A DNA stretch of 64,000 nucleotides from Auanema rhodensis (lineage: Eukaryota > Animalia > Nematoda), in assembly GCA_964057225.1 (NCBI GenBank), contig OZ059895.1, positions 10,726,001-10,790,000 on the forward strand. The letters run 5' to 3'. Under the pieces are notes generated by a model. That model ran no database searches and had not been told where the DNA came from. It saw only the letters and a program-made list of their open reading frames with translations. Positions 1 through 64,000 of the stretch are shown here, one piece after another; the first letter of the stretch is position 1; each line of letters starts with the position of its first letter. Made by a program: the position numbers and the translations under genes.

Positions 1-75
1 AGTTAATGAACCTTCATGGCCCGGTTAGTAGTTGGATCGGAGACGGCTTGGGAATCCCGGGTGGTGTAAGCTTTT
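1..75 (+). pseudogene. 5S rRNA 3' fragment (nt ~50-119 plus terminator); representative copy, present in every monomer
   Basis: AGTTAATGAACCTTCATGGCCCGGTTAGTAGTTGGATCGGAGACGGCTTGGGAATCCCGGGTGGTGTAAGCTTTT aligns by eye to nematode 5S (recalled C. elegans AGTTAAGCAACGTTGAGTCCAGTTAGTACTTGGATCGGAGACGGCCTGGGAATCCTGGATGTTGTAAGCTTTT). Confidence 0.92.
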
Positions 76-83
76 CAAATTTT

Positions 84-125
84 TTTAACAATCATAACAC
101 GTTGAAAGTACGCCATGCAGCTGAT
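84..125 (+). pseudogene. 5S rRNA 5' fragment (nt ~1-43); representative copy, present in every monomer
   Basis: ACAATCATAACACGTTGAAAGTACGCCAT versus recalled C. elegans 5S nt 5-33 ACGACCATATCACGTTGAATGCACGCCAT gives 24/29 identity by eye. It continues GCAGCTGAT versus CCCGTCCGAT. Confidence 0.85.
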
Positions 126-246
126 TTTCAATTTTATCTCTTCCGTAACAAATTTATTCAATTTTCAAGCAGTTTTACTTAGACAGCTCAAACCACGGCA
201 GCAAAATATCTTTAATCTTGATTCTATATTACAACTATGAACCAGT
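126..246 (+). other. ~120 bp AT-rich non-5S segment of the monomer (insertion or former spacer); representative copy
   Basis: Lies between the 5S 5' fragment and the box A region, with no recognisable 5S similarity. Contains TTTTCAATTTT sub-repeats and a near-invariant GGCAGCAA. Confidence 0.8.
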
Positions 247-316
247 AGGTAATGAACCTCCATGGCCGGTTAGTAGTTGGATCGCAGACGGCTTGGGAAT
301 CCCGGGTGGCGTAAGC

Positions 317-331
317 TTTTCAAATTTTTTT
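317..331 (+). terminator. Pol III-type oligo(T) terminator (TTTT then T6-7) after the 5S 3' end; representative copy
   Basis: GTAAGC-TTTT-CAAA-TTTTTTT, exactly where a 5S gene terminates. Confidence 0.65.
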
Positions 332-399
332 AACAATCATAACACGTTAAAAGTACGCCATGCAGCTGATTTTTAATTTTGTCTCTTCCGTAACAAATT

Positions 400-3300: not shown

Positions 3301-4800
3301 AAATACGCCATGTAGCTGATTTTTAATTTTATCTCTTCCGTAACAAATTTATTCAATTTTCAAGCAGTTTTACTTAGACAGCTCAAACCACGGCAGCAAA
3401 TTATCTTCAATCTTATTTCTATATTACAGTTATGAACCAGTAGTTAATGAACCTCCATGGCCCGGTTAGTAGTTGGATCGGAGACGGCTTTGGGAATCCC
3501 GGATGGCGTAAGCTTTTCAAATCTTTTCAACAATCATAACACGTTAAAAGTACGCCATGCAGCTGATTTTTAATTTTGTCTCTTCCGTAACAAATTTATT
3601 CAATTTTCAAGCAGTTTTACTTAGATAGCTCAAACCACGGCAGCAAATTATCTTCAATCTTATTTCTATATTACAGTTATGAACGAGTAGTTAATGAACC
3701 TTCATGGCCCGGTTAGTAGTTGCATCGGAGACGGCTTGAGAATCCCGGGTGGCGTATGCTTTTCAAATTTTTTTAACAATCATAACACGTTAAAAGTGCG
3801 CCATGCAGCTGATTTTCAATTTTATCTCTTCCGTAATAAATGTTTTCAATTTTCAAGAAGTCTTACTTAGATAGCAAAACCCAAGGCAGCAAATTATCTT
3901 TAATCTTGATTCTATATTACAACTATGAACCAGTAGGTAATGAACCTCCATGGCCGGTTAGTAGTTGGATCGGAGACGGCTGGGGAATCCCGGGTGGCGT
4001 AAGCTTTTCAAATTTTTTAACAATCATAACACGTTGAAAATACGCCATGTAGCTGATTTTTAATTTTATCTCTTCCGTAACAAATGTTTCCAATTTTCAA
4101 GCAGTTTTACTTAGATAGCTCAACCCAAGGCAGCAAATTATCTTTAGTCTTATTTCTATATTACAGTTATGAACCAGTAGTTAATGAACCTCCATGGCCG
4201 GTTAGTAGTTGGATCGGAGACGGCTTTGGGAATCCCGGATGGCGTAAGCTTTTCAAATTTTTTTAACAATCATAACACGTTAAAAGTACGCCATGCAGCT
4301 GATTTTTAATTTTGTCTCTTCCGTAACAAATTTATTCAATTTTCGAGCAGTTTTACTTAGATAGCTCAAACCACGGCAGCAAATTATCTTCAATCTTATT
4401 TCTATATTACAGTTATGAACCAGTAGTTAATGAACCTTCATGGCCCGGTTAGTAGTTGGATCGGAGACGGCTTGAGAATCCCGGGTGGCGTATGCTTTTC
4501 AAATTTTTTTAACAATCATAACACGTTAAAAGTGCGCCATGCAGCTGATTTTCAATTTTATCTCTTCCGTAATAAATGTTTTCAATTTTCAAGCAGTCTT
4601 ACTTAGATAGCAAAACCCAAGGCAGCAAATTATCTTTAATCTTGATTCTATATTACAACTATGAACCAGTAGGTAATGAACCTCCATGGCCGGTTAGTAG
4701 TTGGATCGGAGACGGCTGGGGAATCCCGGGTGGCGTAAGCTTTTCAAATTTTTTAACAATCATAACACGTTGAAAATACGCCATGTAGCTGATTTTTAAT
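400..4800 (+). repeat. 3-monomer higher-order repeat (736-738 bp period), imperfect
   Basis: Equivalent ORF starts at 890, 1628, 2365, 3103, 3840 and 4576. The GAGAAT/GCGTATGC/AAGTGCG monomer recurs every third unit. Confidence 0.85.
492..543 (+). promoter_or_regulatory. Degenerate type 1 Pol III internal control region (box A - intermediate element - box C); representative copy
   Basis: AGTTAA at the +50 equivalent, GCCCGG at the intermediate element position and TGGATCGGAGACGGC as box C, collinear as in 5S genes apart from a 1-2 nt insertion. The 3' half of box A is diverged and function is unproven. Confidence 0.55.
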
Positions 4801-6560: not shown

Positions 6561-8099
6561 TTTTACTTAGATAGCTCAAACCACGGCAGCAAATTATCTT
6601 CAATCTTATTTCTATATTACAGTTATGAACGAGTAGTTAATGAACCTTCATGGCCCGGTTAGTAGTTGGATCGGAGACGGCTTGAGAATCCCGGGTGGCG
6701 TATGCTTTTCAAATTTTTTTAACAATCATAACACGTTAAAAGTGCGCCATGCAGCTGATTTTCAATTTTATCTCTTCCGTAATAAATGTTTTCAATTTTC
6801 AAGCAGTCTTACTTAGATAGCAAAACCCAAGGCAGCAAATTATCTTTAATCTTGATTCTATATTACAACTATGAACCAGTAGGTAATGAACCTCCATGGC
6901 CGGTTAGTAGTTGGATCGGAGACGGCTGGGGAATCCCGGGTGGCGTAAGCTTTTCAAATTTTTTAACAATCATAACACGTTGAAAATACGCCATGTAGCT
7001 GATTTTTAATTTTATCTCTTCCGTAACAAATGTTTCCAATTTTCAAGCAGTTTTACTTAGATAGCTCAACCCAAGGCAGCAAATTATCTTTAGTCTTATT
7101 TCTATATTACAGTTATGAACCAGTAGTTAATGAACCTCCATGGCCGGTTAGTAGTTGGATCGGAGACGGCTTTGGGAATCCCGGATGGCGTAAGCTTTTC
7201 AAATCTTTTCAACAATCATAACACGTTAAAAGTACGCCATGCAGCTGATTTTTAATTTTGTCTCTTCCGTAACAAATTTATTCAATTTTCGAGCAGTTTT
7301 ACTTAGATAGCTCAAACCACGGCAGCAAATTATCTTCAATCTTATTTCTATATTACAGTTATGAACCAGTAGTTAATGAACCTTCATGGCCCGGTTAGTA
7401 CTTGGATCGGAGACGGCTTTGGGAATCCCGGATGGCGTAAGCTTTTCAAATCTTTTCAACAATCATAACACGTTAAAAGTACGCCATGCAGCTGATTTTT
7501 AATTTTGTCTCTTCCGTAATAAATGTTTTCAATTTTCAAGAAGTCTTACTTAGATAGCAAAACCCAAGGCAGCAAATTATCTTTAATCTTGATTCTATAT
7601 TACAACTATGAACCAGTAGGTAATGAACTTTCATGGCCCGGTTAGTAGTTGGATCGGAGACGGCTTGGGAATCCCGGATGGCGTAAACTTTTCAAATTTT
7701 TTTAACAATCATAACACGTTGAAAGTACGCCATGCAGCTGATTTTTAATTTTATCTCTTCCGTAACAAATGTTTCCAATTTTCAAGCAGTTTTACTTAGA
7801 TAGCTCAACCCAAGGCAGCAAAATATCTTTAATCTTATTTCTATATTACAGTTATGAACCAGTAGTTAATGAACCTTCATGGCCCGGTTAGTAGTTGGAT
7901 CGGAGACGGCTTGGGAATCCCGGGTGGCGTAAGCTTTTCAAATTTTTTTAACAATCATAACACGTTAAAAGTACGCCATGCAGCTGATTTTTAATTTTGT
8001 CTCTTCCGTAACAAATTTATTCAATTTTCAAGCAGTTTTACTTAGATAGCTCAAACCACGGCAGCAAATTATCTTCAATATTATTTCTATATTACAGTT

Positions 8100-11000
8100 A
8101 TGAACCAGTAGTTAATGAACTTTCATGGCCCGGTTAGTAGTTGGATCGGAGACGGCTTGGGAATCCCGGATGGCGTAAACTTTTCAAATTTTTTTAACAA
8201 TCATAACACGTTGAAAGTACGCCATGCAGCTGATTTTTAATTTTATCTCTTCCGTAACAAATGTTTCCAATTTTCAAGCAGTTTTACTTAGATAGCTCAA
8301 CCCAAGGCAGCAAAATATCTTTAATCTTATTTCTATATTACAGTTATGAACCAGTAGTTAATGAACCTTCATGGCCCGGTTAGTAGTTGGATCGGAGACG
8401 GCTTGGGAATCCCGGGTGGTGTAAGCTTTTCAAATTTTTTTAACAATCATAACACGTTGAAAGTACGCCATGCAGCTGATTTTCAATTTTATCTCTTCCG
8501 TAACAAATTTATTCAATTTTCAAGCAGTTTTACTTAGACAGCTCAAACCACGGCAGCAAAATATCTTTAATCTTGATTCTATATTACAACTATGAACCAG
8601 TAGGTAATGAACCTCCATGGCCGGTTAGTAGTTGGATCGCAGACGGCTTGGGAATCCCGGGTGGCGTAAGCTTTTCAAATTTTTTTAACAATCATAACAC
8701 GTTAAAAGTACGCCATGCAGCTGATTTTTAATTTTGTCTCTTCCGTAACAAATTTATTCAATTTTCAAGCAGTTTTACTTAGACAGCTCAAACCACGGCA
8801 GCAAATTATCTTCAATCTTATTTCTATATTACAGTTATGAACCAGTAGTTAATGAACCTTCATGGCCCGGTTAGTAGTTGGATCGGAGACGGCTTTGGGA
8901 ATCCCGGATGGCGTAAGCTTTTCAAATCTTTTCAACAATCATAACACGTTAAAAGTACGCCATGCAGCTGATTTTCAATTTTATCTCTTCCGTAACAAAT
9001 TTATTCAATTTTCAAGCAGTTTTACTTAGATAGCTCAAACCACGGCAGCAAAATATCTTTAATCTTGATTCTATATTACAACTATGAACCAGTAGGTAAT
9101 GAACCTCCATGGCCGGTTAGTAGTTGGATCGCAGACGGCTTGGGAATCCCGGGTGGCGTAAGCTTTTCAAATTTTTTTAACAATCATAACACGTTAAAAG
9201 TACGCCATGCAGCTGATTTTTAATTTTGTCTCTTCCGTAACAAATTTATTCAATTTTCAAGCAGTTTTACTTAGACAGCTCAAACCACGGCAGCAAATTA
9301 TCTTTAGTCTTATTTCTATATTACAGTTATGAACCAGTAGTTAATGAACCTCCATGGCCGGTTAGTAGTTGGATCGCAGACGGCTTGGAAATCCCGGGTG
9401 GCGTAAGCTTTTCAAATTTTTTTAACAATCATAACACGTTAAAAGTACGCCATGCAGCTGATTTTTAATTTTGTCTCTTCCGTAACAAATTTATTCAATT
9501 TTCAAGCAGTTTTACTTAGACAGCTCAAACCACGGCAGCAAATTATCTTCAATCTTATTTCTATATTACAGTTATGAACCAGTAGTTAATGAACCTTCAT
9601 GGCCCGGTTAGTAGTTGGATCGGAGACGGCTTTGGGAATCCCGGATGGCGTAAGCTTTTCAAATCTTTTCAACAATCATAACACGTTGAAAATACGCCAT
9701 GCAGCTGATTTTTAATTTTGTCTCTTCCGTAACAAATTTATTCAATTTTCAAGCAGTTTTACTTAGATAGCTCAAACCACGGCAGCAAATTATCTTCAAT
9801 CTTATTTCTATATTACAGTTATGAACGAGTAGTTAATGAACCTTCATGGCCCGGTTAGTAGTTGGATCGGAGACGGCTTGACAATCCCGGGTGGCGTAAG
9901 CTTTTCAAATTTTTTTAACAATCATAACACGTTAAAAGTGCGCCATGCAGCTGATTTTCAATTTTATCTCTTCCGTAATAAATGTTTTCAATTTTCAAGC
10001 AGTCTTACTTAGATAGCAAAACCCAAGGCAGCAAATTATCTTTAATCTTGATTCTATATTACAACTATGAACCAGTAGTTAATGAACTTTCATGGCCCGG
10101 TTAGTAGTTGGATCGGAGACGGCTTGGGAATCCCGGATGGCGTAAACTTTTCAAATTTTTTTAACAATCATAACACGTTGAAAGTACGCCATGCAGCTGA
10201 TTTTTAATTTTATCTCTTCCGTAACAAATGTTTCCAATTTTCAAGCAGTTTTACTTAGATAGCTCAACCCAAGGCAGCAAAATATCTTTAATCTTATTTC
10301 TATATTACAGTTATGAACCAGTAGTTAATGAACCTTCATGGCCCGGTTAGTAGTTGGATCGGAGACGGCTTGGGAATCCCGGGTGGTGTAAGCTTTTCAA
10401 ATTTTTTTAACAATCATAACACGTTGAAAGTACGCCATGCAGCTGATTTTCAATTTTATCTCTTCCGTAACAAATTTATTCAATTTTCAAGCAGTTTTAC
10501 TTAGACAGCTCAAACCACGGCAGCAAAATATCTTTAATCTTGATTCTATATTACAACTATGAACCAGTAGGTAATGAACCTCCATGGCCGGTTAGTAGTT
10601 GGATCGCAGACGGCTTGGGAATCCCGGGTGGCGTAAGCTTTTCAAATTTTTTTAACAATCATAACACGTTAAAAGTACGCCATGCAGCTGATTTTTAATT
10701 TTGTCTCTTCCGTAACAAATTTATTCAATTTTCAAGCAGTTTTACTTAGACAGCTCAAACCACGGCAGCAAATTATCTTCAATCTTATTTCTATATTACA
10801 GTTATGAACCAGTAGTTAATGAACCTTCATGGCCCGGTTAGTAGTTGGATCGGAGACGGCTTTGGGAATCCCGGATGGCGTAAGCTTTTCAAATCTTTTC
10901 AACAATCATAACACGTTAAAAGTACGCCATGCAGCTGATTTTCAATTTTATCTCTTCCGTAACAAATTTATTCAATTTTCAAGCAGTTTTACTTAGATAG

Positions 11001-12040
11001 CTCAAACCACGGCAGCAAAATATCTTTAATCTTGATTCTATATTACAACTATGAACCAGTAGGTAATGAACCTCCATGGCCGGTTAGTAGTTGGATCGCA
11101 GACGGCTTGGGAATCCCGGGTGGCGTAAGCTTTTCAAATTTTTTTAACAATCATAACACGTTAAAAGTACGCCATGCAGCTGATTTTTAATTTTGTCTCT
11201 TCCGTAACAAATTTATTCAATTTTCAAGCAGTTTTACTTAGACAGCTCAAACCACGGCAGCAAATTATCTTTAGTCTTATTTCTATATTACAGTTATGAA
11301 CCAGTAGTTAATGAACCTCCATGGCCGGTTAGTAGTTGGATCGCAGACGGCTTGGAAATCCCGGGTGGCGTAAGCTTTTCAAATTTTTTTAACAATCATA
11401 ACACGTTAAAAGTACGCCATGCAGCTGATTTTTAATTTTGTCTCTTCCGTAACAAATTTATTCAATTTTCAAGCAGTTTTACTTAGACAGCTCAAACCAC
11501 GGCAGCAAATTATCTTCAATCTTATTTCTATATTACAGTTATGAACCAGTAGTTAATGAACCTTCATGGCCCGGTTAGTAGTTGGATCGGAGACGGCTTT
11601 GGGAATCCCGGATGGCGTAAGCTTTTCAAATCTTTTCAACAATCATAACACGTTGAAAATACGCCATGCAGCTGATTTTTAATTTTGTCTCTTCCGTAAC
11701 AAATTTATTCAATTTTCAAGCAGTTTTACTTAGATAGCTCAAACCACGGCAGCAAATTATCTTCAATCTTATTTCTATATTACAGTTATGAACGAGTAGT
11801 TAATGAACCTTCATGGCCCGGTTAGTAGTTGGATCGGAGACGGCTTGAGAATCCCGGGTGGCGTATGCTTTTCAAATTTTTTTAACAATCATAACACGTT
11901 AAAAGTGCGCCATGCAGCTGATTTTCAATTTTATCTCTTCCGTAATAAATGTTTTCAATTTTCAAGCAGTCTTACTTAGATAGCAAAACCCAAGGCAGCA
12001 AATTATCTTTAATCTTGATTCTATATTACAACTATGAACC
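8100..12040 (+). repeat. 8-monomer tandem duplication (1967 bp period)
   Basis: The rare GAACTTT variant at 8117 and 10084 is followed by the same series of monomer types (GGTGGTGT, CAAAATATC, TCGCAG, TTGGAAAT). Confidence 0.85.
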
Positions 12041-15000
12041 AGTAGGTAATGAACCTCCATGGCCGGTTAGTAGTTGGATCGGAGACGGCTGGGGAATCCC
12101 GGGTGGCGTAAGCTTTTCAAATTTTTTAACAATCATAACACGTTGAAAATACGCCATGTAGCTGATTTTTAATTTTATCTCTTCCGTAACAAATGTTTCC
12201 AATTTTCAAGCAGTTTTACTTAGATAGCTCAACCCAAGGCAGCAAATTATCTTTAGTCTTATTTCTATATTACAGTTATGAACCAGTAGTTAATGAACCT
12301 CCATGGCCGGTTAGTAGTTGGATCGCAGACGGCTTGGAAATCCCGGGTGGCGTAAGCTTTTCAAATTTTTTTAACAATCATAACACGTTAAAAGTACGCC
12401 ATGCAGCTGATTTTTAATTTTGTCTCTTCCGTAACAAATTTATTCTATTTTCAAGCAGTTTTACTTAGACAGCTCAAACCACGGCAGCAAATTATCTTCA
12501 ATCTTATTTCTATATTACAGTTATGAACCAGTAGTTAATGAACCTTCATGGCCCGGTTAGTAGTTGGATCGGAGACGGCTTTGGGAATCCCGGATGGCGT
12601 AAGCTTTTCAAATCTTTTCAACAATTATAACACGTTAAAAGTACGCCATGCAGCTGATTTTTAATTTTGTCTCTTCCGTAACAAATTTATTCAATTTTCA
12701 AGCAGTTTTACTTAGACAGCTCAAACCACGGCAGCAAATTATCTTCAATCTTATTTCTATATTACAGTTATGAACCAGTAGTTAATGAACCTTCATGGCC
12801 CGGTTAGTAGTTGGATCGGAGACGGCTTGAGAATCCCGGGTGGCGTAAGCTTTTCAAATCTTTTCAACAATCATAACACGTTAAAAGTACGCCATGCAGC
12901 TGATTTTTAATTTTGTCTCTTCCGTAACAAATTTATTCAATTTTCAAGCAGTTTTACTTAGATAGCTCAAACCACGGCAGCAAATTATCTTCAATCTTAT
13001 TTCTATATTACAGTTATGAACGAGTAGTTAATGAACCTTCATGGCCCGGTTAGTAGTTGGATCGGAGACGGCTTGAGAATCCCGGGTGGCGTATGCTTTT
13101 CAAATTTTTTTAACAATCATAACACGTTAAAAGTGCGCCATGCAGCTGATTTTCAATTTTATCTCTTCCGTAATAAATGTTTTCAATTTTCAAGCAGTCT
13201 TACTTAGATAGCAAAACCCAAGGCAGCAAATTATCTTTAATCTTGATTCTATATTACAACTATGAACCAGTAGGTAATGAACCTCCATGGCCGGTTAGTA
13301 GTTGGATCGGAGACGGCTGGGGAATCCCGGGTGGCGTAAGCTTTTCAAATTTTTTTAACAATCATAACACGTTAAAAGTACGCCATGCAGCTGATTTTTA
13401 ATTTTGTCTCTTCCGTAACAAATTTATTCAATTTTCAAGCAGTTTTACTTAGACAGCTCAAACCACGGCAGCAAATTATCTTCAATCTTATTTCTATATT
13501 ACAGTTATGAACCAGTAGTTAATGAACCTCCATGGCCCGGTTAGTAGTTGGATCGGAGACGGCTTTGGGAATCCCGGATGGCGTAAGCTTTTCAAATCTT
13601 TTCAACAATAATAACACGTTAAAAGTACGCCATGCAGCTGATTTTTAATTTTGTCTCTTCCGTAACAAATTTATTCAATTTTCAAGCAGTTTTACTTAGA
13701 TAGCTCAAACCACGGCAGCAAATTATCTTCAATCTTATTTCTATATTACAGTTATGAACCAGTAGTTAATGAACCTTCATGGCCCGGTTAGTAGTTGGAT
13801 CGGAGACGGCTTTGGGAATCCCGGATGGCGTAAGCTTTTCAAATCTTTTCAACAATCATAACACGTTAAAAGTACGCCATGCAGCTGATTTTTAATTTTG
13901 TCTCTTCCGTAACAAATTTATTCAATTTTCAAGCAGTTTTACTTAGATAGCTCAAACCACGGCAGCAAATTATCTTCAATTTTATTTCTATATTACAGTT
14001 ATGAACGAGTAGTTAATGAACCTTCATGGCCCGGTTAGTAGTTGGATCGGAGACGGCTTGAGAATCCCGGGTGGCGTATGCTTTTCAAATTTTTTTAACA
14101 ATCATAACACGTTAAAAGTGCGCCATGCAGCTGATTTTCAATTTTATCTCTTCCGTAATAAATGTTTTCAATTTTCAAGCAGTCTTACTTAGATAGCAAA
14201 ACCCAAGGCAGCAAATTATCTTTAGTCTTATTTCTATATTACAGTTATGAACCAGTAGTTAATGAACCTCCATGGCCGGTTAGTAGTTGGATTGCAGACG
14301 GCTTGGAAATCCCGGGTGGCGTAAGCTTTTCAAATTTTTTTAACAATCATAACACGTTAAAAGTACGCCATGCAGCTGATTTTTAATTTTGTCTCTTCCG
14401 TAACAAATTTATTCAATTTTCAAGCAGTTTTACTTAGACAGCTCAAACCACGGCAGCAAATTATCTTCAATCTTATTTATATATTACAGTTATGAACCAG
14501 TAGTTAATGAACCTTCATGGCCCGGTTAGTAGTTGGATCGGAGACGGCTTGAGAATCCCGGGTGGCGTATGCTTTTCAAATTTTTTTAACAATCATAACA
14601 CGTTGAAAGTACGCCATGCAGCTGATTTTCAATTTTATCTCTTCCGTAATAAATGTTTTCAATTTTCAAGCAGTCTTACTTAGATAGCAAAACCCAAGGC
14701 AGCAAATTATCTTTAATCTTATTCCTATATTACAGTTATGAACCAGTAGTTAATGAACCTTCATGGCCCGGTTAGTAGTTGGATCGGAGACGGCTTTGGG
14801 AATCCCGGATGGCGTAAGCTTTTCAAATCTTTTCAACAATCATAACACGTTAAAAATACGCCATGCAGCTGATTTTTAATTTTGTCTCTTCCGTAACAAA
14901 TTTATTCAATTTTCAAGCAGTTTTACTTAGATAGCTCAAACCACGGCAGCAAATTATCTTCAATCTTATTTCTATATTACAGTTATGAACGAGTAGTTAA

Positions 15001-18000
15001 TGAACCTTCATGGCCCGGTTAGTAGTTGGATCGGAGACGGCTTGAGAATCCCGGGTGGCGTATGCTTTTCAAATTTTTTTAACAATCATAACACGTTAAA
15101 AGTGCGCCATGCAGCTGATTTTCAATTTTATCTCTTCCGTAATAAATGTTTTCAATTTTCAAGCAGTCTTACTTAGATAGCAAAACCCAAGGCAGCAAAT
15201 TATCTTTAATCTTGATTCTATATTACAACTATGAACCAGTAGGTAATGAACCTCCATGGCCGGTTAGTAGTTGGATCGGAGACGGCTGGGGAATCCCGGG
15301 TGGCGTAAGCTTTTCAAATTTTTTAACAATCATAACACGTTGAAAATACGCCATGTAGCTGATTTTTAATTTTATCTCTTCCGTAACAAATGTTTCCAAT
15401 TTTCAAGCAGTTTTACTTAGATAGCTCAACCCAAGGCAGCAAATTATCTTTAGTCTTATTTCTATATTACAGTTATGAACCAGTAGTTAATGAACCTCCA
15501 TGGCCGGTTAGTAGTTGGATCGGAGACGGCTTTGGGAATCCCGGATGGCGTAAGCTTTTCAAATCTTCTCAACAATCATAACACGTTAAAAGTACGCCAT
15601 GCAGCTGATTTTTAATTTTATCTCTTCCGTAACAAATTTATTCAATTTTCAAGCAGTTTTTCTTAGACAGCTCAAACCACGGCAGCAAAATATCTTTAAT
15701 CTTGATTCTATATTACAACTATGAACCAGTAGGTAATGAACCTCCATGGCCGGTTAGTAGTTGGATCGCAGACGGCTTGGGAATCCCGGGTGGCGTAAGC
15801 TTTTCAAATTTTTTTAACAATCATAACACGTTAAAAGTACGCCATGCAGCTGATTTTTAATTTTGTCTCTTCCGTAACAAATTTATTCAATTTTCAAGCA
15901 GTTTTACTTAGACAGCTCAAACCACGGCAGCAAATTATCTTCAATCTTATTTCTATATTACAGTTATGAACCAGTAGTTAATGAACCTTCATGGCCCGGT
16001 TAGTAGTTGGATCGGAGACGGCTTTGGGAATCCCGGATGGCGTAAGCTTTTCAAATCTTTTCAACAATCATAACACGTTAAAAGTACGCCATGCAGCTGA
16101 TTTTCAATTTTATCTCTTCCGTAACAAATTTATTCAATTTTCAAGCAGTTTTACTTAGATAGCTCAAACCACGGCAGCAAAATATCTTTAATCTTGATTC
16201 TATATTACAACTATGAACCAGTAGGTAATGAACCTCCATGGCCGGTTAGTAGTTGGATCGCAGACGGCTTGGGAATCCCGGGTGGCGTAAGCTTTTCAAA
16301 TTTTTTTAACAATCATAACACGTTAAAAGTACGCCATGCAGCTGATTTTTAATTTTGTCTCTTCCGTAACAAATTTATTCAATTTTCAAGCAGTTTTACT
16401 TAGACAGCTCAAACCACGGCAGCAAATTATCTTTAGTCTTATTTCTATATTACAGTTATGAACCAGTAGTTAATGAACCTCCATGGCCGGTTAGTAGTTG
16501 GATCGCAGACGGCTTGGAAATCCCGGGTGGCGTAAGCTTTTCAAATTTTTTTAACAATCATAACACGTTAAAAGTACGCCATGCAGCTGATTTTTAATTT
16601 TGTCTCTTCCGTAACAAATTTATTCAATTTTCAAGCAGTTTTACTTAGACAGCTCAAACCACGGCAGCAAATTATCTTCAATCTTATTTCTATATTACAG
16701 TTATGAACCAGTAGTTAATGAACCTTCATGGCCCGGTTAGTAGTTGGATCGGAGACGGCTTTGGGAATCCCGGATGGCGTAAGCTTTTCAAATCTTTTCA
16801 ACAATCATAACACGTTGAAAATACGCCATGCAGCTGATTTTTAATTTTGTCTCTTCCGTAACAAATTTATTCAATTTTCAAGCAGTTTTACTTAGATAGC
16901 TCAAACCACGGCAGCAAATTATCTTCAATCTTATTTCTATATTACAGTTATGAACGAGTAGTTAATGAACCTTCATGGCCCGGTTAGTAGTTGGATCGGA
17001 GACGGCTTGAGAATCCCGGGTGGCGTATGCTTTTCAAATTTTTTTAACAATCATAACACGTTAAAAGTGCGCCATGCAGCTGATTTTCAATTTTATCTCT
17101 TCCGTAATAAATGTTTTCAATTTTCAAGCAGTCTTACTTAGATAGCAAAACCCAAGGCAGCAAATTATCTTTAATCTTGATTCTATATTACAACTATGAA
17201 CCAGTAGGTAATGAACCTCCATGGCCGGTTAGTAGTTGGATCGGAGACGGCTGGGGAATCCCGGGTGGCGTAAGCTTTTCAAATTTTTTAACAATCATAA
17301 CACGTTGAAAATACGCCATGTAGCTGATTTTTAATTTTATCTCTTCCGTAACAAATGTTTCCAATTTTCAAGCAGTTTTACTTAGATAGCTCAACCCAAG
17401 GCAGCAAATTATCTTTAGTCTTATTTCTATATTACAGTTATGAACCAGTAGTTAATGAACCTCCATGGCCGGTTAGTAGTTGGATCGCAGACGGCTTGGA
17501 AATCCCGGGTGGCGTAAGCTTTTCAAATTTTTTTAACAATCATAACACGTTAAAAGTACGCCATGCAGCTGATTTTTAATTTTGTCTCTTCCGTAACAAA
17601 TTTATTCTATTTTCAAGCAGTTTTACTTAGACAGCTCAAACCACGGCAGCAAATTATCTTCAATCTTATTTCTATATTACAGTTATGAACCAGTAGTTAA
17701 TGAACCTTCATGGCCCGGTTAGTAGTTGGATCGGAGACGGCTTTGGGAATCCCGGATGGCGTAAGCTTTTCAAATCTTTTCAACAATTATAACACGTTAA
17801 AAGTACGCCATGCAGCTGATTTTTAATTTTGTCTCTTCCGTAACAAATTTATTCAATTTTCAAGCAGTTTTACTTAGACAGCTCAAACCACGGCAGCAAA
17901 TTATCTTCAATCTTATTTCTATATTACAGTTATGAACCAGTAGTTAATGAACCTTCATGGCCCGGTTAGTAGTTGGATCGGAGACGGCTTGAGAATCCCG

Positions 18001-20781
18001 GGTGGCGTAAGCTTTTCAAATCTTTTCAACAATCATAACACGTTAAAAGTACGCCATGCAGCTGATTTTTAATTTTGTCTCTTCCGTAACAAATTTATTC
18101 AATTTTCAAGCAGTTTTACTTAGATAGCTCAAACCACGGCAGCAAATTATCTTCAATCTTATTTCTATATTACAGTTATGAACGAGTAGTTAATGAACCT
18201 TCATGGCCCGGTTAGTAGTTGGATCGGAGACGGCTTGAGAATCCCGGGTGGCGTATGCTTTTCAAATTTTTTTAACAATCATAACACGTTAAAAGTGCGC
18301 CATGCAGCTGATTTTCAATTTTATCTCTTCCGTAATAAATGTTTTCAATTTTCAAGCAGTCTTACTTAGATAGCAAAACCCAAGGCAGCAAATTATCTTT
18401 AATCTTGATTCTATATTACAACTATGAACCAGTAGGTAATGAACCTCCATGGCCGGTTAGTAGTTGGATCGGAGACGGCTGGGGAATCCCGGGTGGCGTA
18501 AGCTTTTCAAATTTTTTTAACAATCATAACACGTTAAAAGTACGCCATGCAGCTGATTTTTAATTTTGTCTCTTCCGTAACAAATTTATTCAATTTTCAA
18601 GCAGTTTTACTTAGACAGCTCAAACCACGGCAGCAAATTATCTTCAATCTTATTTCTATATTACAGTTATGAACCAGTAGTTAATGAACCTCCATGGCCC
18701 GGTTAGTAGTTGGATCGGAGACGGCTTTGGGAATCCCGGATGGCGTAAGCTTTTCAAATCTTTTCAACAATAATAACACGTTAAAAGTACGCCATGCAGC
18801 TGATTTTTAATTTTGTCTCTTCCGTAACAAATTTATTCAATTTTCAAGCAGTTTTACTTAGATAGCTCAAACCACGGCAGCAAATTATCTTCAATCTTAT
18901 TTCTATATTACAGTTATGAACCAGTAGTTAATGAACCTTCATGGCCCGGTTAGTAGTTGGATCGGAGACGGCTTTGGGAATCCCGGATGGCGTAAGCTTT
19001 TCAAATCTTTTCAACAATCATAACACGTTAAAAGTACGCCATGCAGCTGATTTTTAATTTTGTCTCTTCCGTAACAAATTTATTCAATTTTCAAGCAGTT
19101 TTACTTAGATAGCTCAAACCACGGCAGCAAATTATCTTCAATTTTATTTCTATATTACAGTTATGAACGAGTAGTTAATGAACCTTCATGGCCCGGTTAG
19201 TAGTTGGATCGGAGACGGCTTGAGAATCCCGGGTGGCGTATGCTTTTCAAATTTTTTTAACAATCATAACACGTTAAAAGTGCGCCATGCAGCTGATTTT
19301 CAATTTTATCTCTTCCGTAATAAATGTTTTCAATTTTCAAGCAGTCTTACTTAGATAGCAAAACCCAAGGCAGCAAATTATCTTTAGTCTTATTTCTATA
19401 TTACAGTTATGAACCAGTAGTTAATGAACCTCCATGGCCGGTTAGTAGTTGGATTGCAGACGGCTTGGAAATCCCGGGTGGCGTAAGCTTTTCAAATTTT
19501 TTTAACAATCATAACACGTTAAAAGTACGCCATGCAGCTGATTTTTAATTTTGTCTCTTCCGTAACAAATTTATTCAATTTTCAAGCAGTTTTACTTAGA
19601 CAGCTCAAACCACGGCAGCAAATTATCTTCAATCTTATTTATATATTACAGTTATGAACCAGTAGTTAATGAACCTTCATGGCCCGGTTAGTAGTTGGAT
19701 CGGAGACGGCTTGAGAATCCCGGGTGGCGTATGCTTTTCAAATTTTTTTAACAATCATAACACGTTGAAAGTACGCCATGCAGCTGATTTTCAATTTTAT
19801 CTCTTCCGTAATAAATGTTTTCAATTTTCAAGCAGTCTTACTTAGATAGCAAAACCCAAGGCAGCAAATTATCTTTAATCTTATTCCTATATTACAGTTA
19901 TGAACCAGTAGTTAATGAACCTTCATGGCCCGGTTAGTAGTTGGATCGGAGACGGCTTTGGGAATCCCGGATGGCGTAAGCTTTTCAAATCTTTTCAACA
20001 ATCATAACACGTTAAAAATACGCCATGCAGCTGATTTTTAATTTTGTCTCTTCCGTAACAAATTTATTCAATTTTCAAGCAGTTTTACTTAGATAGCTCA
20101 AACCACGGCAGCAAATTATCTTCAATCTTATTTCTATATTACAGTTATGAACGAGTAGTTAATGAACCTTCATGGCCCGGTTAGTAGTTGGATCGGAGAC
20201 GGCTTGAGAATCCCGGGTGGCGTATGCTTTTCAAATTTTTTTAACAATCATAACACGTTAAAAGTGCGCCATGCAGCTGATTTTCAATTTTATCTCTTCC
20301 GTAATAAATGTTTTCAATTTTCAAGCAGTCTTACTTAGATAGCAAAACCCAAGGCAGCAAATTATCTTTAATCTTGATTCTATATTACAACTATGAACCA
20401 GTAGGTAATGAACCTCCATGGCCGGTTAGTAGTTGGATCGGAGACGGCTGGGGAATCCCGGGTGGCGTAAGCTTTTCAAATTTTTTAACAATCATAACAC
20501 GTTGAAAATACGCCATGTAGCTGATTTTTAATTTTATCTCTTCCGTAACAAATGTTTCCAATTTTCAAGCAGTTTTACTTAGATAGCTCAACCCAAGGCA
20601 GCAAATTATCTTTAGTCTTATTTCTATATTACAGTTATGAACCAGTAGTTAATGAACCTCCATGGCCGGTTAGTAGTTGGATCGGAGACGGCTTTGGGAA
20701 TCCCGGATGGCGTAAGCTTTTCAAATCTTCTCAACAATCATAACACGTTAAAAGTACGCCATGCAGCTGATTTTTAATTTT
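10452..20781 (+). repeat. 21-monomer near-perfect tandem duplication (5162 bp period)
   Basis: ORF pairs 11949/17111, 12193/17355, 13177/18339, 14162/19324, 15146/20308 and 15390/20552 are all 5162 apart, and private SNPs are duplicated. Confidence 0.93.
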
Positions 20782-23700
20782 GTCTCTTCCGTAACAAATT
20801 TATTCAATTTTCAAGCAGTATTACTTAGATAGCAAAACCCAAGGCAGCAAATTATCTTTAATCTTGATTCTATATTACAACTATGAACCAGTAGGTAATG
20901 AACCTCCATGGCCGGTTAGTAGTTGGATCGGAGACGGCTGGGGAATCCCGGGTGGCGTAAGCTTTTCAAATTTTTTAACAATTATAACACGTTAAAAGTG
21001 CGCCATGCAGCTGATTTTCAATTTTATCTCTTCCGTAACAAATGTTTCCAATTTTCAAGCAGTTTTACTTAGATAGCTCAACCCAAGGCAGCAAATTATC
21101 TTTAATCTTGATTCTATATTACAACTATGAACCAGTAGGTAATGAACCTCCATGGCCGGTTAGTAGTTGGATCGGAGACGGCTGGGGAATCCCGGGTGGC
21201 GTAAGCTTTTCAAATTTTTTAACAATCATAACACGTTGAAAATACGCCATGTAGCTGATTTTTAATTTTATCTCTTCCGTAACAAATGTTTCCAATTTTC
21301 AAGCAGTTTTACTTAGATAGCTCAACCCAAGGCAGCAAATTATCTTTAGTCTTATTTCTATATTACAGTTATGAACCAGTAGTTAATGAACCTTCATGGC
21401 CCGGTTAGTAGTTGGATCGGAGACGGCTTGAGAATCCCGGGTGGCGTATGCTTTTCAAATTTTTTTAACAATCATAACACGTTGAAAGTACGCCATGCAG
21501 CTGATTTTCAATTTTATCTCTTCCGTAATAAATGTTTTCAATTTTCAAGCAGTCTTACTTAGATAGCAAAACCCAAGGCAGCAAATTATCTTTAATCTTA
21601 TTCCTATATTACAGTTATGAACCAGTAGTTAATGAACCTTCATGGCCCGGTTAGTAGTTGGATCGGAGACGGCTTGGGAATCCCGGGTGGCGTAAGCTTT
21701 TCAAATTTTTTCAACAATCATAACACGTTGAAAGTACGCCATGCAGCTGATTTTCAATTTTATCTCTTCCGTAACAAACTTATTCAATTTTCAAGCAGTC
21801 TTACTTAGATAGCAAAACCCAAGGCAGCAAATTATCTTCAATCTTGATTCTATATTACAGCTATGAACCAGTAGTTAATGAACCTCCATGGCCGGTTAGT
21901 AGTTGGATCGGAGACGGCTTGGGAATCCCGGGTGGCGTAAGATTTTCAAATTTTTTCAACAATCATAACACGTTGAAAGTACGCCATGCAGCTGATTTTC
22001 AATTTTATCTCTTCCGTAACAAACTTATTCAATTTTCAAGCAGTCTTACTTAGATAGCAAAACCCAAGGCAGCAAATTATCTTCAATCTTGATTCTATAT
22101 TACAGCTATGAACCAGTAGTTAATGAACCTCCATGGCCGGTTAGTAGTTGGATCGGAGACGGCTTGGGAATCCCGGGTGGCGTAAGATTTTCAAATCTTT
22201 TCAACAATCATAACACGTTGAAAGTACGGCATGCAGCTGATTTTTAATTTTGTCTCTTCCGTAACAAATTTATTCAATTTTCAAGCAGTTTTACTTAGAT
22301 AGCTCAAACCACGGCAGCAAATTATCTTCAATCTTATTTCTATATTACAGTTATGAACCAGTAGTTAATGAACCTTCATGGCCCGGTTAGTAGTTGGATC
22401 GGAGACGGCTTGGGAATCCCGGGTGGCGTAAGCTTTTTAAATTTTTTTAACAATCATAACACGTTGAAAGTACGCCATGCAGCTGATTTTTAATTTTGTC
22501 TCTTCCGTAACAAATTTATTCAATTTTCAAGCAGTTTTACTTAGATAGCTCAAACCACGGCAGCAAATTATCTTCAATCTTATTTCTATATTACAGTTAT
22601 GAACCAGTAGTTAATGAACCTTCATGGCCCGGTTAGTAGTTGGATCGGAGACGGCTTGAGAATCCCGGGTGGCGTATGCTTTTCGAGTTTTTTTAACAAT
22701 CATAACACGTTAAAAGTGCGCCATGCAGCTGATTTTCAATTTTATCTCTTCCGTAATAAATGTTTTCAATTTTCAAGCAGTCTTACTTAGATAGCAAAAC
22801 CCAAGGCAGCAAATTATCTTTAATCTTGATTCTATATTACAACTATGAACCAGTAGGTAATGAACCTCCATGGCCGGTTAGTAGTTGGATCGGAGACGGC
22901 TGGGGAATCCCGGGTGGCGTAAGCTTTTCAAATTTTTTAACAATCATAACACGTTGAAAATACGCCATGTAGCTGATTTTTAATTTTATCTCTTCCGTAA
23001 CAAATGTTTCCAATTTTCAAGCAGTTTTACTTAGATAGCTCAACCCAAGGCAGCAAATTATCTTTAATCTTATTTCTATATTACAGTTATGAACCAGTAG
23101 TTAATGAACCTCCATGGCCGGTTAGTAGTTGGATCGGAGACGGCTTTGGGAATCCCGGATGGCGTAAGCTTTTCAAATCTTTTCAACAATCATAACACGT
23201 TAAAAGTACGCCATGCAGCTGATTTTTAATTTTGTCTCTTCCGTAACAAATTTATTCAATTTTCGAGCAGTTTTACTTAGATAGCTCAAACCACGGCAGC
23301 AAATTATCTTCAATCTTATTTCTATATTACAGTTATGAACCAGTAGTTAATGAACCTTCATGGCCCGGTTAGTAGTTGGATCGGAGACGGCTTGAGAATC
23401 CCGGGTGGCGTATGCTTTTCAAATTTTTTTAACAATCATAACACGTTAAGAGTGCGCCATGCAGCTGATTTTCAATTTTATCTCTTCCGTAATAAATGTT
23501 TTCAATTTTCAAGCAGTCTTACTTAGATAGCAAAACCCAAGGCAGCAAATTATCTTTAATCTTGATTCTATATTACAACTATGAACCAGTAGGTAATGAA
23601 CCTCCATGGCCGGTTAGTAGTTGGATCGGAGACGGCTGGGGAATCCCGGGTGGCGTAAGCTTTTCAAATTTTTTAACAATCATAACACGTTGAAAATACG

Positions 23701-49770: not shown

Positions 49771-49929
49771 GTAATAAATTTATTCAATTTTCAAGCAGTT
49801 TTACTTAGATAGCTCAAACCACGGCAGCAAATTATCTTCAATCTTATTTCTATATTACAGTTATGAACCAGTAGTTAATGAATCTTCATGGCCCGGTTAG
49901 TAGTTGGATCGGAGACGGCTTGGGAATCC

Positions 49930-58900: not shown

Positions 58901-61900
58901 TTAGATAGCTCAAACCACGGCAGCAAATTATCTTCAATCTTATTTCTATATTACAGTTATGAACCAGTAGTTAATGAACCTTCATGGCCCGGTTAGTAGT
59001 TGGATCGGAGACGGCTTTGGGAATCCCGGATGGCGTAAGCTTTTCAAATTTTTTTAACAATCATAACACGTTGAAAATACGCCATGCAGCTGATTTTTAA
59101 TTTTATCTGTTCCGTAACAAATGTTTTCAATTTTCAAGCAGTTTTACTTAGACAGCTCAACCCAAGGCAGCAAATTATCTTCAGTCTTATTTCTATATTA
59201 CAGTTATGAACCAGTTGTTAATGAACCTTCATGGCTCGGTTAGTAGTTGGATCGGAGACGGCTTGGGAATCCCGGATGGCGTAAACTTTTCAAATTTTTT
59301 TAACAATCATAACATGTTGAAAGTACGCCATGCAGCTGATTTTTAATTTTATCTCTTCCGTAACAAATGTTTCCAATTTTCAAGCAGTTTTACTTAGAGA
59401 GCTCAACCCAAGGCAGCAAATTATCTTTAATCTTATTTCTATATTACAGTTATGAACCAGTAGTTAATGAACCTTCATGGCCCGGTTAGTAGTTGGATCG
59501 GAGACGGCTTGGGAATCCCGGGTGGCGTAAGCTTTTCAAATTTTTTTAACAATCATAACACGTTGAAAGTACGCCATTCAGCTGATTTTCAATTTTATCT
59601 CTTCCGTAATAAATGTTTTCAATTTTCAAGCAGTCTTACTTAGATAGCAAAACCCAAGGCAGCAAATTATCTTTAATCTTGATTCTATATTACAGCTATG
59701 AACCAGTAGTTAATGAACCTCCATGGCCGGTTAGTAGTTGGATCGGAGACGGCTTGGGAATCCCGGGTGGCGTAAGCTTTTCAAATTTTTTTAACAATCA
59801 TAACACGTTAAAAGTACGCCATGCAGCTGATTTCTAATTTTGTCTCTTCCGTAACAAATTTATTCAATTTTCAAGCAGTTTTACTTAGATAGCTCAAACC
59901 ACGGCAGCAAATTATCTTCAATCTTATTTCTATATTACAGTTATGAACCAGTAGTTAATGAACCTTCATGGCCCGGTTAGTAGTTGGATCGGAGACGGCT
60001 TTGGGAATCCCGGATAGCGTAAGCTTTTCAAATTTTCTTAACAATCATAACACGTTGAAAATACGCCATGCAGCTGATTTTTAATTTTATCTGTTCCGTA
60101 ACAAATGTTTTCAATTTTCAAGCAGTTTTACTTAGACAGCTCAACCCAAGGCAGCAAATTATCTTCAGTCTTATTTCTATATTACAGTTATGAACCAGTT
60201 GTTAATGAACCTTCATGGCTCGGTTAGTAGTTGGATCGGAGACGGCTTTGGGAATCCCGGGTGGAGTAAACTTTTCAAATTTTTTTAACAATCATAACAC
60301 GTTGAAAATACGCCATTCAGCTGATTTTCAATTTTATCTCTTCCGTAATAAATGTTTTCAATTTTCAAGCAGTCTTACTTAGATAGCAAAACCCAAGGCA
60401 GCAAATTATCTTCAGTCTTATTTCTATATTACAGTTATGAACCAGTTGTTAATGAACCTCCATGGCCGGTTAGTAGTTGGATCGGAGACGGCTTGGGAAT
60501 CCTGGGTGGCGTAAGCTTCTCAAATTTTTTTAACAATCATAACATGTTGAAAGTACGCCATGCAGCTGATTTTTAATTTTATCTCTTCCGTAACAAATGT
60601 TTCCAATTTTCAAGCAGTTTTACTTAGATAGCTCAACCCAAGGCAGCAAATTATCTTTAATCTTATTTCTATATTACAGTTATGAACCAGTAGTTAATGA
60701 ACCTTCATGGCCCGGTTAGTAGTTGGATCGGAGACGGCTTGGGAATCCCGGGTGGCGTAAGCTTTTCAAATTTTTTTAACAATCATAACACGTTGAAAGT
60801 ACGCCATTCAGCTGATTTTCAATTTTATCTCTTCCGTAATAAATGTTTTCAATTTTCAAGCAGTCTTACTTAGATAGCAAAACCCAAGGCAGCAATTTAT
60901 CTTTAATCTTGATTCTATATCACAGCTATGAACCAGTAGTTAATGAACCTCCATGGCCGGTTAGTAGTTGGATCGGAGACGGCTTTGGAATCCCGGGTGG
61001 CGTAAGCTTTTCAAATTTTTTTAACAATCATAACACGTTAAAAGTACGCCATGCAGCTGATTTTTAATTTTGTCTCTTCCGTAACAAATTTATTCAATTT
61101 TCAAGCAGTTTTACTTAGATAGCTCAAACCACGGCAGCAAATTATCTTCAATCTTATTTCTATATTACAGTTATGAACCAGTAGTTAATGAACCTCCATG
61201 GCCGGTTAGTAGTTGGATCGGAGACGGCTTGGGAATCCCGGATGGCGTAAACTTTTCAAATTTTTTCAACAATCATAACACGTTGAAAGTACGCCATGCA
61301 GCTGATTTTTAATTTTATCTCTTCCGTAACAAATGTTTCCAATTTTCAAGCAGTTTTACTTAGATAGCAAAACCCAAGGCAGCAAATTATCTTTAATCTT
61401 GATTCTATATTACAGCTATGAACCAGTAGTTAATGAACCTTCATGGCCCGGTTAGTAGTTGGATCGGAGACGGCTTGGGAATCCCGGGTGGCGTAAGCTT
61501 TTCAAATTTTTTTAACAATCATAACACGTTGAAAGTACGCCATTCAGCTGATTTTCAATTTTATCTCTTCCGTAATAAATGTTTTCAATTTTCAAGCAGT
61601 CTTACTTAGATAGCAAAACCCAAGGCAGCAATTTATCTTTAATCTTGATTCTATATCACAGCTATGAACCAGTAGTTAATGAACCTCCATGGCCGGTTAG
61701 TAGTTGGATCGGAGACGGCTTTGGAATCCCGGGTGGCGTAAGCTTTTCAAATTTTTTTAACAATCATAACACGTTAAAAGTACGCCATGCAGCTGATTTT
61801 TAATTTTGTCTCTTCCGTAACAAATTTATTCAATTTTCAAGCAGTTTTACTTAGATAGCTCAAACCACGGCAGCAAATTATCTTCAATCTTATTTCTATA

Positions 61901-64000
61901 TTACAGTTATGAACCAGTAGTTAATGAATCTTCATGGCCCGGTTAGTAGTTGGATCGGAGACGGCTTTGAGAATCCCGGATGGCGTAAGCTTTTCAAATT
62001 TTTTTAACAATCATAACACGTTGAAAATACGCCATTCAGCTGATTTTCAATTTTATCTCTTCCGTAATAAATGTTTTCAATTTTCAAGCAGTCTTACTTA
62101 GATAGCAAAACCCAAGGCAGCAAATTATCTTTAATCTTGATTCTATATTACAGCTATGAACCAGTAGTTAATGAACCTCCATGGCCGGTTAGTAGTTGGA
62201 TCGGAGACGGCTTGGGAAACCCGGGTGGCGTAAACTTTTCAAATTTTTTTAACAATCATAACACGTTGAAAGTACGCCATGCAGCTGATTTTTAATTTTA
62301 TCTCTTCCGTAACAAATGTTTCCAATTTTCAAGCAGTTTTACTTAGATAGCTCAACCCAAGGCAGCAAATTATCTTTAATCTTATTTCTATATTACAGTT
62401 ATGAACCAGTAGTTAATGAACCTTCATGGCCCGGTTAGTAGTTGGATCGGAGACGGCTTTGGGAATCCCGGATGGCGTAAGCTTTTCAAATTTTTTTAAC
62501 AATCATAACACGTTGAAAATACGCCATTCAGCTGATTTTCAATTTTATCTCTTCCGTAATAAATGTTTTCAATTTTCAAGCAGTCTTACTTAGATAGCAA
62601 AACCCAAGGCAGCAAATTATCTTTAATCTTGATTCTATATTACAGCTATGAACCAGTAGTTAATGAACCTCCATGGCCGGTTAGTAGTTGGATCGGAGAC
62701 GGCTTGGGAATCCCGGATGGCGTAAACTTTTCAAATTTTTTTAACAATCATAACACGTTGAAAGTACGCCATGCAGCTGATTTTTAATTTTATCTCTTCC
62801 GTAACAAATGTTTCCAATTTTCAAGCAGTTTTACTTAGATAGCAAAACCCAAGGTAGCAAATTATCTTTAATCTTGATTCTATATTACAGCTATGAACCA
62901 GTAGTTAATGAACCTCCATGGCCGGTTAGTAGTTGGATCGGAGACGGCTTGGGAATCCTGGGTGGCGTAAGCTTCTCAAATTTTTTTAACAATCATAACA
63001 CGTTAAAAGTACGCCATGCAGCTGATTTTTAATTTTGTCTCTTCCGTAACAAATTTATTCAATTTTCAAGCAGTTTTACTTAGATAGCTCAAACCACGGC
63101 AGCAAATTATCTTCAATCTTATTTCTATATTACAGTTATGAACCAGTAGTTAATGAACCTTCATGGCCCGGTTAGTAGTTGGATCGGAGACGGCTTTGGG
63201 AATCCCGGATGGCGTAAGCTTTTCAAATTTTTTTAACAATCATAACACGTTGAAAATACGCCATGCAGCTGATTTTTAATTTTATCTGTTCCGTAACAAA
63301 TGTTTTCAATTTTCAAGCAGTTTTACTTAGACAGCTCAACCCAAGGCAGCAAATTATCTTCAGTCTTATTTCTATATTACAGTTATGAACCAGTTGTTAA
63401 TGAACCTTCATGGCTCGGTTAGTAGTTGGATCGGAGACGGCTTGGGAATCCCGGATGGCGTAAACTTTTCAAATTTTTTTAACAATCATAACATGTTGAA
63501 AGTACGCCATGCAGCTGATTTTTAATTTTATCTCTTCCGTAACAAATGTTTCCAATTTTCAAGCAGTTTTACTTAGATAGCTCAACCCAAGGCAGCAAAT
63601 TATCTTTAATCTTATTTCTATATTACAGTTATGAACCAGTAGTTAATGAACCTTCATGGCCCGGTTAGTAGTTGGATCGGAGACGGCTTGGGAATCCCGG
63701 GTGGCGTAAGCTTTTCAAATTTTTTTAACAATCATAACACGTTGAAAGTACGCCATTCAGCTGATTTTCAATTTTATCTCTTCCGTAATAAATGTTTTCA
63801 ATTTTCAAGCAGTCTTACTTAGATAGCAAAACCCAAGGCAGCAAATTATCTTTAATCTTGATTCTATATTACAGCTATGAACCAGTAGTTAATGAACCTC
63901 CATGGCCGGTTAGTAGTTGGATCGGAGACGGCTTGGGAATCCCGGGTGGCGTAAGCTTTTCAAATTTTTTTAACAATCATAACACGTTAAAAGTACGCCA
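49930..64000 (+). repeat. 10-monomer higher-order repeat (2458 bp) with 11-mer (2705 bp) and 17-mer (4179 bp) derivatives
   Basis: The equivalent ORF trio starts at 50271, 52729, 55187, 57892 and 62071, giving spacings of 2458, 2458, 2705 and 4179. Confidence 0.9.

Follow-up and report, generated by a model that had tools for sequence, protein, structure and literature searches.

The 64,000-nucleotide stretch of DNA analysed here (the window) is likely to be non-coding satellite DNA that has grown from decayed nematode 5S rDNA. As an earlier note on this DNA had claimed for units of 246 bp over at least 64 kb, a single tandem array occupies the whole window (1-64000), with a period of 246, 260.5 copies, and 93% matches (TRF). 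The array runs without interruption, and all of its 260 complete units are 241-247 bp in length. In each unit, the 3' part of a 5S gene with a TTTT is followed by a linker of 11 bp (the distance from 5S nt 119 to the next nt 1), the 5' part of the gene (nt ~4-45), and 117 bp of AT-rich non-5S DNA (Table 1); the two spacings had been estimated at ~12 bp and ~120 bp. Both ends of the 5S gene are present in every unit, and the 117 bp of non-5S DNA split them near nt 45-49.

Table 1. Positions of the array, of the features of its first unit, and of a hypothetical transcription unit within the window.
Feature	Position	Strand	Basis or remark
Tandem array, 246-bp unit x 260.5	1..64000	+	Extends past both window ends
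First unit: degraded box A stretch, 5S nt 50-64, 2-nt insertion	1..17	+	nhmmer alignment; anchored test p about 0.02; 4/12 invariant positions of nt 49-64 changed
First unit: 5S nt 65-119 (intermediate element, loop E, box C, helices IV/V, helix I 3' strand)	18..72	+	87-96% identity to real nematode-type 5S; 1/45 invariant positions changed
First unit: TTTT terminator, CAAA, T7 run; last three T's at 5S nt 1-3	72..86	+	Sequence reading; T4+ run at the site in 260/260 copies
First unit: 5' piece, 5S nt 1-45; firm core nt 4-33 at 87-116; nt 38 deleted	84..127	+	nhmmer, alignment; 7/32 invariant positions of nt 4-45 changed
First unit: AT-rich segment, 117 bp, 3-5 T4+ runs in or just before first half	128..244	+	Without 5S, tRNA or other Rfam match, without terminal repeats
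Hypothetical Pol III unit: 49 nt AT-rich leader + 5S nt 50-119, no T4 run before natural terminator	198..320	+	Sequence inspection

The turnover of the units resembles that of ordinary satellite DNA, with local higher-order repeats and mosaic units. The mean pairwise difference between units is 6.1%, whereas the similarity within working beetle 5S arrays is 99.4% (PMC11202950). There are 137 distinct sequences among the 260 units, local periodicities of 3, 21, 4, and 10 units are seen within the array, and the four-gamete test is failed by 383 of 496 site pairs.

The earlier note had read the 5S gene as lying in two pieces, the 3' part before the 5' part, and had expected two partial matches to RF00001 in that order. 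The 3' piece was found by the Rfam model (model positions 51-120 at window positions 1-72, 30.1 bits, E=0.0016), short of the gathering score of 38, and is given 50.7 bits by a nematode-type profile; real 5S genes score 107-115 bits with the Rfam model. Within the 3' domain, 12 of 13 base pairs are kept. However, C78 is changed to G in 259 of the 260 copies, which breaks the pair C78-G98, and box C carries a non-5S change in 113 copies and is unchanged in 147. The 5' piece was missed by the Rfam search, and a nematode-type covariance model gave only non-significant matches to it, of about 2 bits. It was detected by nhmmer (E=2e-5) and by pairwise alignment, which place a significant 5S match at 84-127, where the note had put the 5' part (84-125). 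Against nine real nematode-type 5S genes, selected by a pattern from nt 70-104 and none of them chosen from the 5' side, the 5' piece scores 37-47.5 (null mean 15.5-17.7), none of 3000 dinucleotide shuffles being as good, and its identity to such genes is 71-76% over nt 4-45. The firmly supported 5S cores are nt 4-33 and nt 65-119. Weaker support was obtained for nt 34-45 (p about 0.015) and for box A, nt 50-64 (p about 0.02, with a 2-nt insertion), and nt 46-48 were not detected in the unit; thus the statement that nearly all of a 5S gene is present holds in extent but is weak in the middle. Pattern scans from the 5' piece across genome and viral contig collections gave no matches.

The GC content of the 117-bp AT-rich part is 28%. 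Local and global alignments of this part to 5S were at the shuffle mean, it had no match in the flanks of the nine foreign 5S loci, and a tRNA search of the unit found none. A MITE-like or solo-LTR insert was considered and rejected: the inverted match found at the piece borders gave p=0.08 in an anchored test and p=0.89 overall, and the TG...CA ends and a 3-of-5 "target duplication" are incompatible with the 5S sequence. A covariance-model alignment hinted at another decayed 5' end immediately before box A, which was not significant. Furthermore, 91 open reading frames of 60-91 aa occur, in about a third of the units; they are not a constant feature, and coding potential was dismissed.

The unit cannot make 5S rRNA and is not a new kind of ribosomal RNA gene. 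No full-length 5S match, that is, a continuous gene of 119-120 nt, is present in the window, where the best score is that of the 3' piece. Among the base pairs that would join the two pieces, 11 of 22 are broken or missing, and helices I-III are half broken without compensating changes. A T4+ run follows nt 119 in every copy, and 3-5 further T4+ runs lie between the 5' piece and the next 3' piece; with runs of T4-T7 behind both pieces in all copies, a single transcript across both is not supported. Nor is the promoter intact, box A being changed and carrying the insertion, in addition to the alterations of box C. Per-site diversity is 0.047 in nt 65-119 (26 of 55 sites variable), 0.045 in the 5' piece, and 0.074 in the AT-rich part, and the differences are not significant (p=0.99 and 0.26). 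The 5S-derived positions vary about as freely as the rest, without significant constraint within the array, although the numerically lower diversity of the 5S parts would allow a weak one.

The earlier note had left the choice between an interrupted and a permuted 5S gene. The two-piece 5S satellite stands; within a head-to-tail array, however, the two readings amount only to different choices of monomer start, and thus they are indistinguishable. Neither would be a functional gene: each piece is followed by terminator-like runs of T, the helices that would join the two are disrupted, and the array shows no internal sign of constraint. A circularly permuted gene that works, or an intron-containing gene from which the 117-bp insert is spliced out, could explain why the two pieces complement each other almost exactly in extent, together covering 5S nearly completely, and why the boundaries of the unit are near the mature RNA ends. 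In a type 1 promoter, the start is set about 50 nt before box A. Here, a start about 165 nt before it would be needed. Moreover, a permuted RNA would need read-through of TTTT and usually of a second run of T6-T7, and an intron-type precursor would have to pass 3-5 runs of T4+. Together with the uncompensated damage to helices I-III and the lack of a full-length match, these features make a functional gene of either form scarcely credible, and judged from the sequence it appears to be largely refuted already.

Regarding the origin of the satellite, unequal crossing-over may have produced a tandem duplication of 246 bp from a larger 5S-pseudogene repeat, and the duplicated unit would then have been amplified and homogenised. 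More tentatively, the crossover might have taken place in shared 5S sequence near nt 65 and have placed the 3' end of a younger 5S copy behind an older interrupted pseudogene (nt 1-45, the insert, and box A). Such a crossover would account for the contrast between the nearly intact nt 65-119 and the more altered nt 4-64: among invariant 5S positions, 11 of 44 are changed in nt 4-64 and 1 of 45 in nt 65-119 (Fisher p=0.0017). When the post-hoc choice of the breakpoint is allowed for, the contrast has p=0.05 (0.023 with indels), and outside nt 70-104, the pattern by which the reference genes were chosen, p=0.096. The contrast is suggestive only, and it is consistent with a recombinant unit in which nt 65-119 would be younger than nt 4-64. 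We infer the duplication and the crossover from sequence within the array; the host 5S gene, its spacer, and the array edge lie outside the window.

The same dead satellite could have arisen by another step, in which a 5S gene lost its 5' part, a separate truncated pseudogene (nt 1-33 or 1-45) lay directly behind it, and the AT-rich part is the old spacer, nothing having been inserted. Xenopus oocyte 5S DNA carries a pseudogene of the 5' part, which counts for such an origin, as do the different divergence of the two pieces and the AT-rich part without terminal repeats or target duplication. The weak support for nt 34-45 and nt 50-64 also means that the break may be less neat than it appears. 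In the newt Notophthalmus, a 36-bp pseudogene lies directly behind the gene of the 5S repeat (PMC2111863). The present unit resembles that repeat in that the gene end and terminator are immediately followed by a partial 5S copy; the newt array, however, retains a complete working gene, and here there is none. Against two independent truncations, the 5' piece apparently ends at nt ~45 and the 3' piece starts at nt ~49 without overlap, so close a meeting being possible only by chance, and the decayed box A stretch is diverged like the 5' piece and unlike the 3' end. We regard this route as possible but somewhat doubtful, and the doubt concerns the step of origin alone, not the verdict of a dead satellite. 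Far less probable is an origin from two 5S genes joined head to tail (2 x 123 bp), of which one would have decayed at the 3' side and its partner at the 5' side. Such a dimer has the right length, and the AT-rich part contains short stretches resembling box C and the 5' end; however, alignments of that part to 5S stayed at the shuffle mean also with cheap transitions and with both main haplotypes (all p>=0.27), and the unit has no internal half-period (best 33% identity).

The array is a long head-to-tail one with significant 5S sequence, no intact 5S coding region, and non-coding-like divergence, and it is a 5S rDNA-derived satellite of the same, well-known kind as PcP190, 5SHindIII, and PLsatB. 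PcP190 of hyloid frogs has a ~190-bp unit whose 5S-like region is a single unbroken stretch of 120 bp, and it is conserved in seven families of frogs (PMC11675491). It shares with the present array the tandem organisation, the combination of 5S-like and non-5S parts, and the origin from 5S rDNA; the present array differs in its split 5S sequence, its 246-bp unit, and its nematode host, and shared ancestry is not implied. 5SHindIII of the fish Hoplias malabaricus (360 bp) combines one 5S-like segment of 95 bp with 265 bp that resemble the spacer of its host, and FISH places it at centromeres (PMC2713275); a non-genic part related to the host 5S spacer is true of 5SHindIII, not of PcP190. Like the array described here, 5SHindIII is a tandem 5S rDNA-derived satellite with a decayed and incomplete gene part, although that part is one segment and not two. 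Nematode chromosomes are often holocentric. Descent from the PcP190 or 5SHindIII families themselves seems implausible, as the 5S parts here match nematode-type genes.

In Plantago lagopus, PLsatB of the B chromosomes is a satellite of 5S rDNA fragments and spacer fragments (PMC6210368, PMC11202950). It was likewise amplified from 5S fragments but is a plant satellite specific to B chromosomes; these papers give no order for its fragments, and a similar split layout is possible in it. 219A of Rana temporaria (PMC12054243) and the spacer satellite of Tribolium freemani (PMC11202950) are further cases of 5S rDNA units becoming satellite arrays, of a size similar to that seen here; in them it is mainly the spacer that remains, the gene being lost or diluted, whereas here both gene ends are kept in each unit. 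SINE3 and Cassandra also contain 5S-derived sequence, including internal promoter boxes, but they are retroelements that occur dispersed and have tails or LTRs (PMC10946416). The present units share the 5S-derived sequence, but their box A is degraded, they are arranged purely in tandem, and they lack tail or LTR ends; within the window we found tandem units only, and neither terminal repeats nor the dispersed copies and target-site duplications of such elements.

In the open literature (subscription papers, Dfam, and Repbase being outside the search), we found no split or permuted 5S satellite and no 5S-derived satellite from a nematode. The suggestion that this may be an undescribed family could hold for the split layout and for the nematode host, but not for the kind of satellite. 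The dead satellite is probably the first nematode example, with an unreported split layout, of the known route from 5S rDNA to satellite DNA, and if it has a role at present, this would be the general role of repetitive heterochromatin and not that of a 5S-like RNA.

On sequence grounds it is conceivable, but improbable, that the array consists of hundreds of tandem Pol III mini-templates, in which the intermediate element, box C, and the terminator are kept and the 5' half is swapped for foreign DNA. The internal promoter of each unit would recruit TFIIIA and TFIIIC, with a start about 49 nt upstream of box A and a chimeric RNA of about 124 nt ending at TTTT; or the array might merely bind TFIIIA through the intact intermediate element and box C, as a large sink. 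Caenorhabditis 5S genes reportedly need upstream flanking sequence, which counts against transcription of the units, as do the changes in box A (4 of 12 invariant positions), the 2-nt insertion that alters its spacing to box C, the nearly universal change of C78, and the free mutation of box C across the array. In a folding test, the predicted RNA did not surpass shuffled sequences (z=+1.3), but this test is weak, real 5S also being near zero in it. In favour of such activity are the nearly intact nt 65-119, the copies with box C unchanged, and a predicted transcript that is free of T4 up to the terminator, though T4 runs are dense just upstream. Furthermore, newt 5S subclones with nt 41-120 alone yielded 5S-sized chimeric RNA in vitro (PMC2111863), and there is evidence of transcription for the frog satellite PcP190 (PMC11675491). 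If the units are transcribed or bound by TFIIIA, the array would matter more, as a naturally occurring, amplified counterpart to the classic promoter-deletion constructs of 5S.

The whole window is a single tandem array with a period of 246 bp (260.5 copies, 93% matches) and a GC content of about 37% along its entire length. The earlier note had described each unit as a 5S rRNA gene in two pieces, the 3' part preceding the 5' part, plus AT-rich DNA, and had expected two partial matches to Rfam RF00001. Rfam matched only the 3' part, at 30.1 bits, which is below the gathering score of 38 for 5S, and did not match the 5' piece. To compare the 5' part with real sequences, we scanned metagenomes with a 35-base pattern taken from the 3' part. 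All nine loci retrieved contain a complete 5S gene (107-115 bits); seven are distinct and one adjoins an 18S gene. From the Caenorhabditis 5S sequence, we take them to be nematode-type. Against these reference genes the 5' piece is significant (nhmmer E=2e-5), and its alignment score exceeds 3000 of 3000 dinucleotide shuffles. Identity is 71-76% over nt 4-45 and 87-96% over nt 65-119. Support is weaker in mid-gene (p~0.015 for nt 34-45; p~0.02 for nt 50-64, which carry a 2-nt insertion), and nt 46-48 have no detectable counterpart in the unit. The 117-bp AT-rich segment showed no 5S likeness by any scoring tried, no Rfam family match, and no significant terminal repeats. Since both pieces are significant and the AT-rich segment is not 5S, the anatomy proposed in the earlier note is correct.

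Locations of features in the window and at metagenome loci holding reference 5S genes
Feature	Location	Remark
Entire array	1-64000	CpG observed/expected 1.0; C>T not in excess of T>C
3' part	1-72	Rfam model positions 51-120
5' piece	84-127	aligns with nt 1-45 of reference 5S genes
AT-rich segment	128-244	first unit
Predicted chimeric start	198	49 nt before box A
Consensus unit	77-322	motif TTTTCAA(A)TTTT up to three times per unit; every run of at least four Ts on + strand, none within ~140 bp before the 5S terminator
Inverted match, 8/9	112-120 and 258-266	decayed end of 5' piece against that of box A; falls short of significance (p=0.08)
Unit with C78	7393-7410	the only one of 260 with this true 5S base; G in all others
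21-unit higher-order repeat	7393-20913	~5.2 kb
5S gene with 18S or 28S rDNA on one contig	L009:750-2558, L001:327-2933, L003:1040-2283	nematode-type; 5S inside the large rDNA unit
5S repeat, ~2.2 kb	L004:4-2260	complete U2 snRNA gene on opposite strand

In a head-to-tail array, an interrupted gene and a permuted gene are the same sequence with the unit taken to begin at different points, so these two readings of the earlier note cannot be told apart within the window; the two-piece 5S satellite itself stands, whereas a working gene does not. Runs of at least four Ts, at which Pol III stops transcribing 5S genes (PMC2111863), occur in all 260 copies, with TTTT after nt 119 and three to five such runs between the 5' piece and the next 3' part. 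To make a permuted RNA, the polymerase would have to read through that TTTT, plus another run of T6-T7 in the majority of copies; for an intron-type precursor, it would have to read through the three to five runs. When the insert is removed on paper, 11 of 22 inter-piece pairs are broken or missing with no compensating change. Inside the 3' domain 12 of 13 pairs are kept, and the sole exception, C78-G98, is lost from 259 of the 260 copies; C78 in the lone unit may stem from back-mutation, gene conversion by a real 5S gene, or sequencing error. No unit in the window has a full-length 5S match. Per-site diversity is 0.047 and 0.045 in the 5S-derived parts versus 0.074 in the AT-rich segment, a difference that is not significant (p=0.99 and 0.26), and 113 of the 260 copies have a non-5S change in box C. 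The mean difference between units is 6.1%; similarity within functional beetle 5S arrays is 99.4% (PMC11202950). The T runs, the broken pairs, the lack of a full-length match, the free variation, and the unit divergence therefore rule out a working 5S array, permuted or interrupted, and the array is most likely a non-functional 5S-derived satellite with a split layout.

From its sequence, it seems very doubtful that the array is transcribed or bound by TFIIIA. A chimeric transcript with the predicted start before box A would meet no T4 run before the natural terminator, and newt subclones limited to nt 41-120 yielded chimeric RNA of 5S size in vitro (PMC2111863). However, box A is changed and re-spaced and box C mutates freely in the array.

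At positions where the seven distinct reference genes all agree, the unit differs from them in 7 of 32 within nt 4-45, 4 of 12 within nt 49-64, and only 1 of 45 within nt 65-119. The contrast between nt 4-64 and nt 65-119 (Fisher p=0.0017) becomes p=0.05 once the chosen breakpoint at nt 65 is allowed for (0.023 with indels counted), and p=0.096 outside nt 70-104, the pattern by which the reference genes were picked. The AT-rich segment is bordered directly on its two sides by the decayed parts, namely the 5' piece and box A. On these thin statistics, we infer as the simplest account that an older 5S pseudogene carrying a 117-bp insertion near nt 45-49 may have lain directly behind a younger 5S copy; unequal crossover near nt 65, in sequence common to both, would then duplicate exactly this 246-bp unit. 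Derivation from a gene that had lost its 5' part and had an independent 5' stub behind it is a somewhat less than even prospect, for which there is a parallel in the newt 5S gene with a short pseudogene directly behind it (PMC2111863).

Satellites derived from 5S have been attributed to old pseudogenisation (PMC7806164). The array shows the three defining features tested here: a long head-to-tail array of a short unit, significant 5S sequence, and no intact 5S coding region, with non-coding-like divergence. Frog PcP190 (~190 bp) has a single continuous 120-bp 5S-like region (PMC11675491), frog 219A is chiefly spacer (PMC12054243), fish 5SHindIII (360 bp) joins 95 bp of 5S-like to 265 bp of spacer-like sequence (PMC2713275), and plant PLsatB combines 5S and spacer fragments (PMC6210368, PMC11202950). 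Unlike these (PLsatB being compared without its fragment order), the present array retains the two ends of the gene on either side of a foreign segment and has next to no spacer. Our literature search, with Dfam, Repbase, and most subscription papers outside it, found no split-layout 5S satellite and no nematode 5S-derived satellite. As for the undescribed family suggested earlier, the array belongs to a documented kind, its split layout being a variant found in none of the searched literature.

The 260 complete units obtained by cutting the array at a fixed anchor are 241-247 bp long and include 137 distinct sequences; neither an insertion nor an array edge lies among them within the 64-kb window. 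No tRNA was found in the window, and short ORFs are limited to about a third of the units. The CpG ratio and the substitution balance (see table) thus show no trace of decay driven by methylation. Higher-order periodicity is local: 3 units close to the start, 21 units over ~7-21 kb, and 4 and 10 units further on. When common variant sites are taken in pairs, 383 of the 496 pairs show all four allele combinations. Together these features are expected where satellite DNA undergoes unequal crossing-over and conversion. The 21-unit repeat, with a difference of only 2.1% at that lag, is a recent local duplication.
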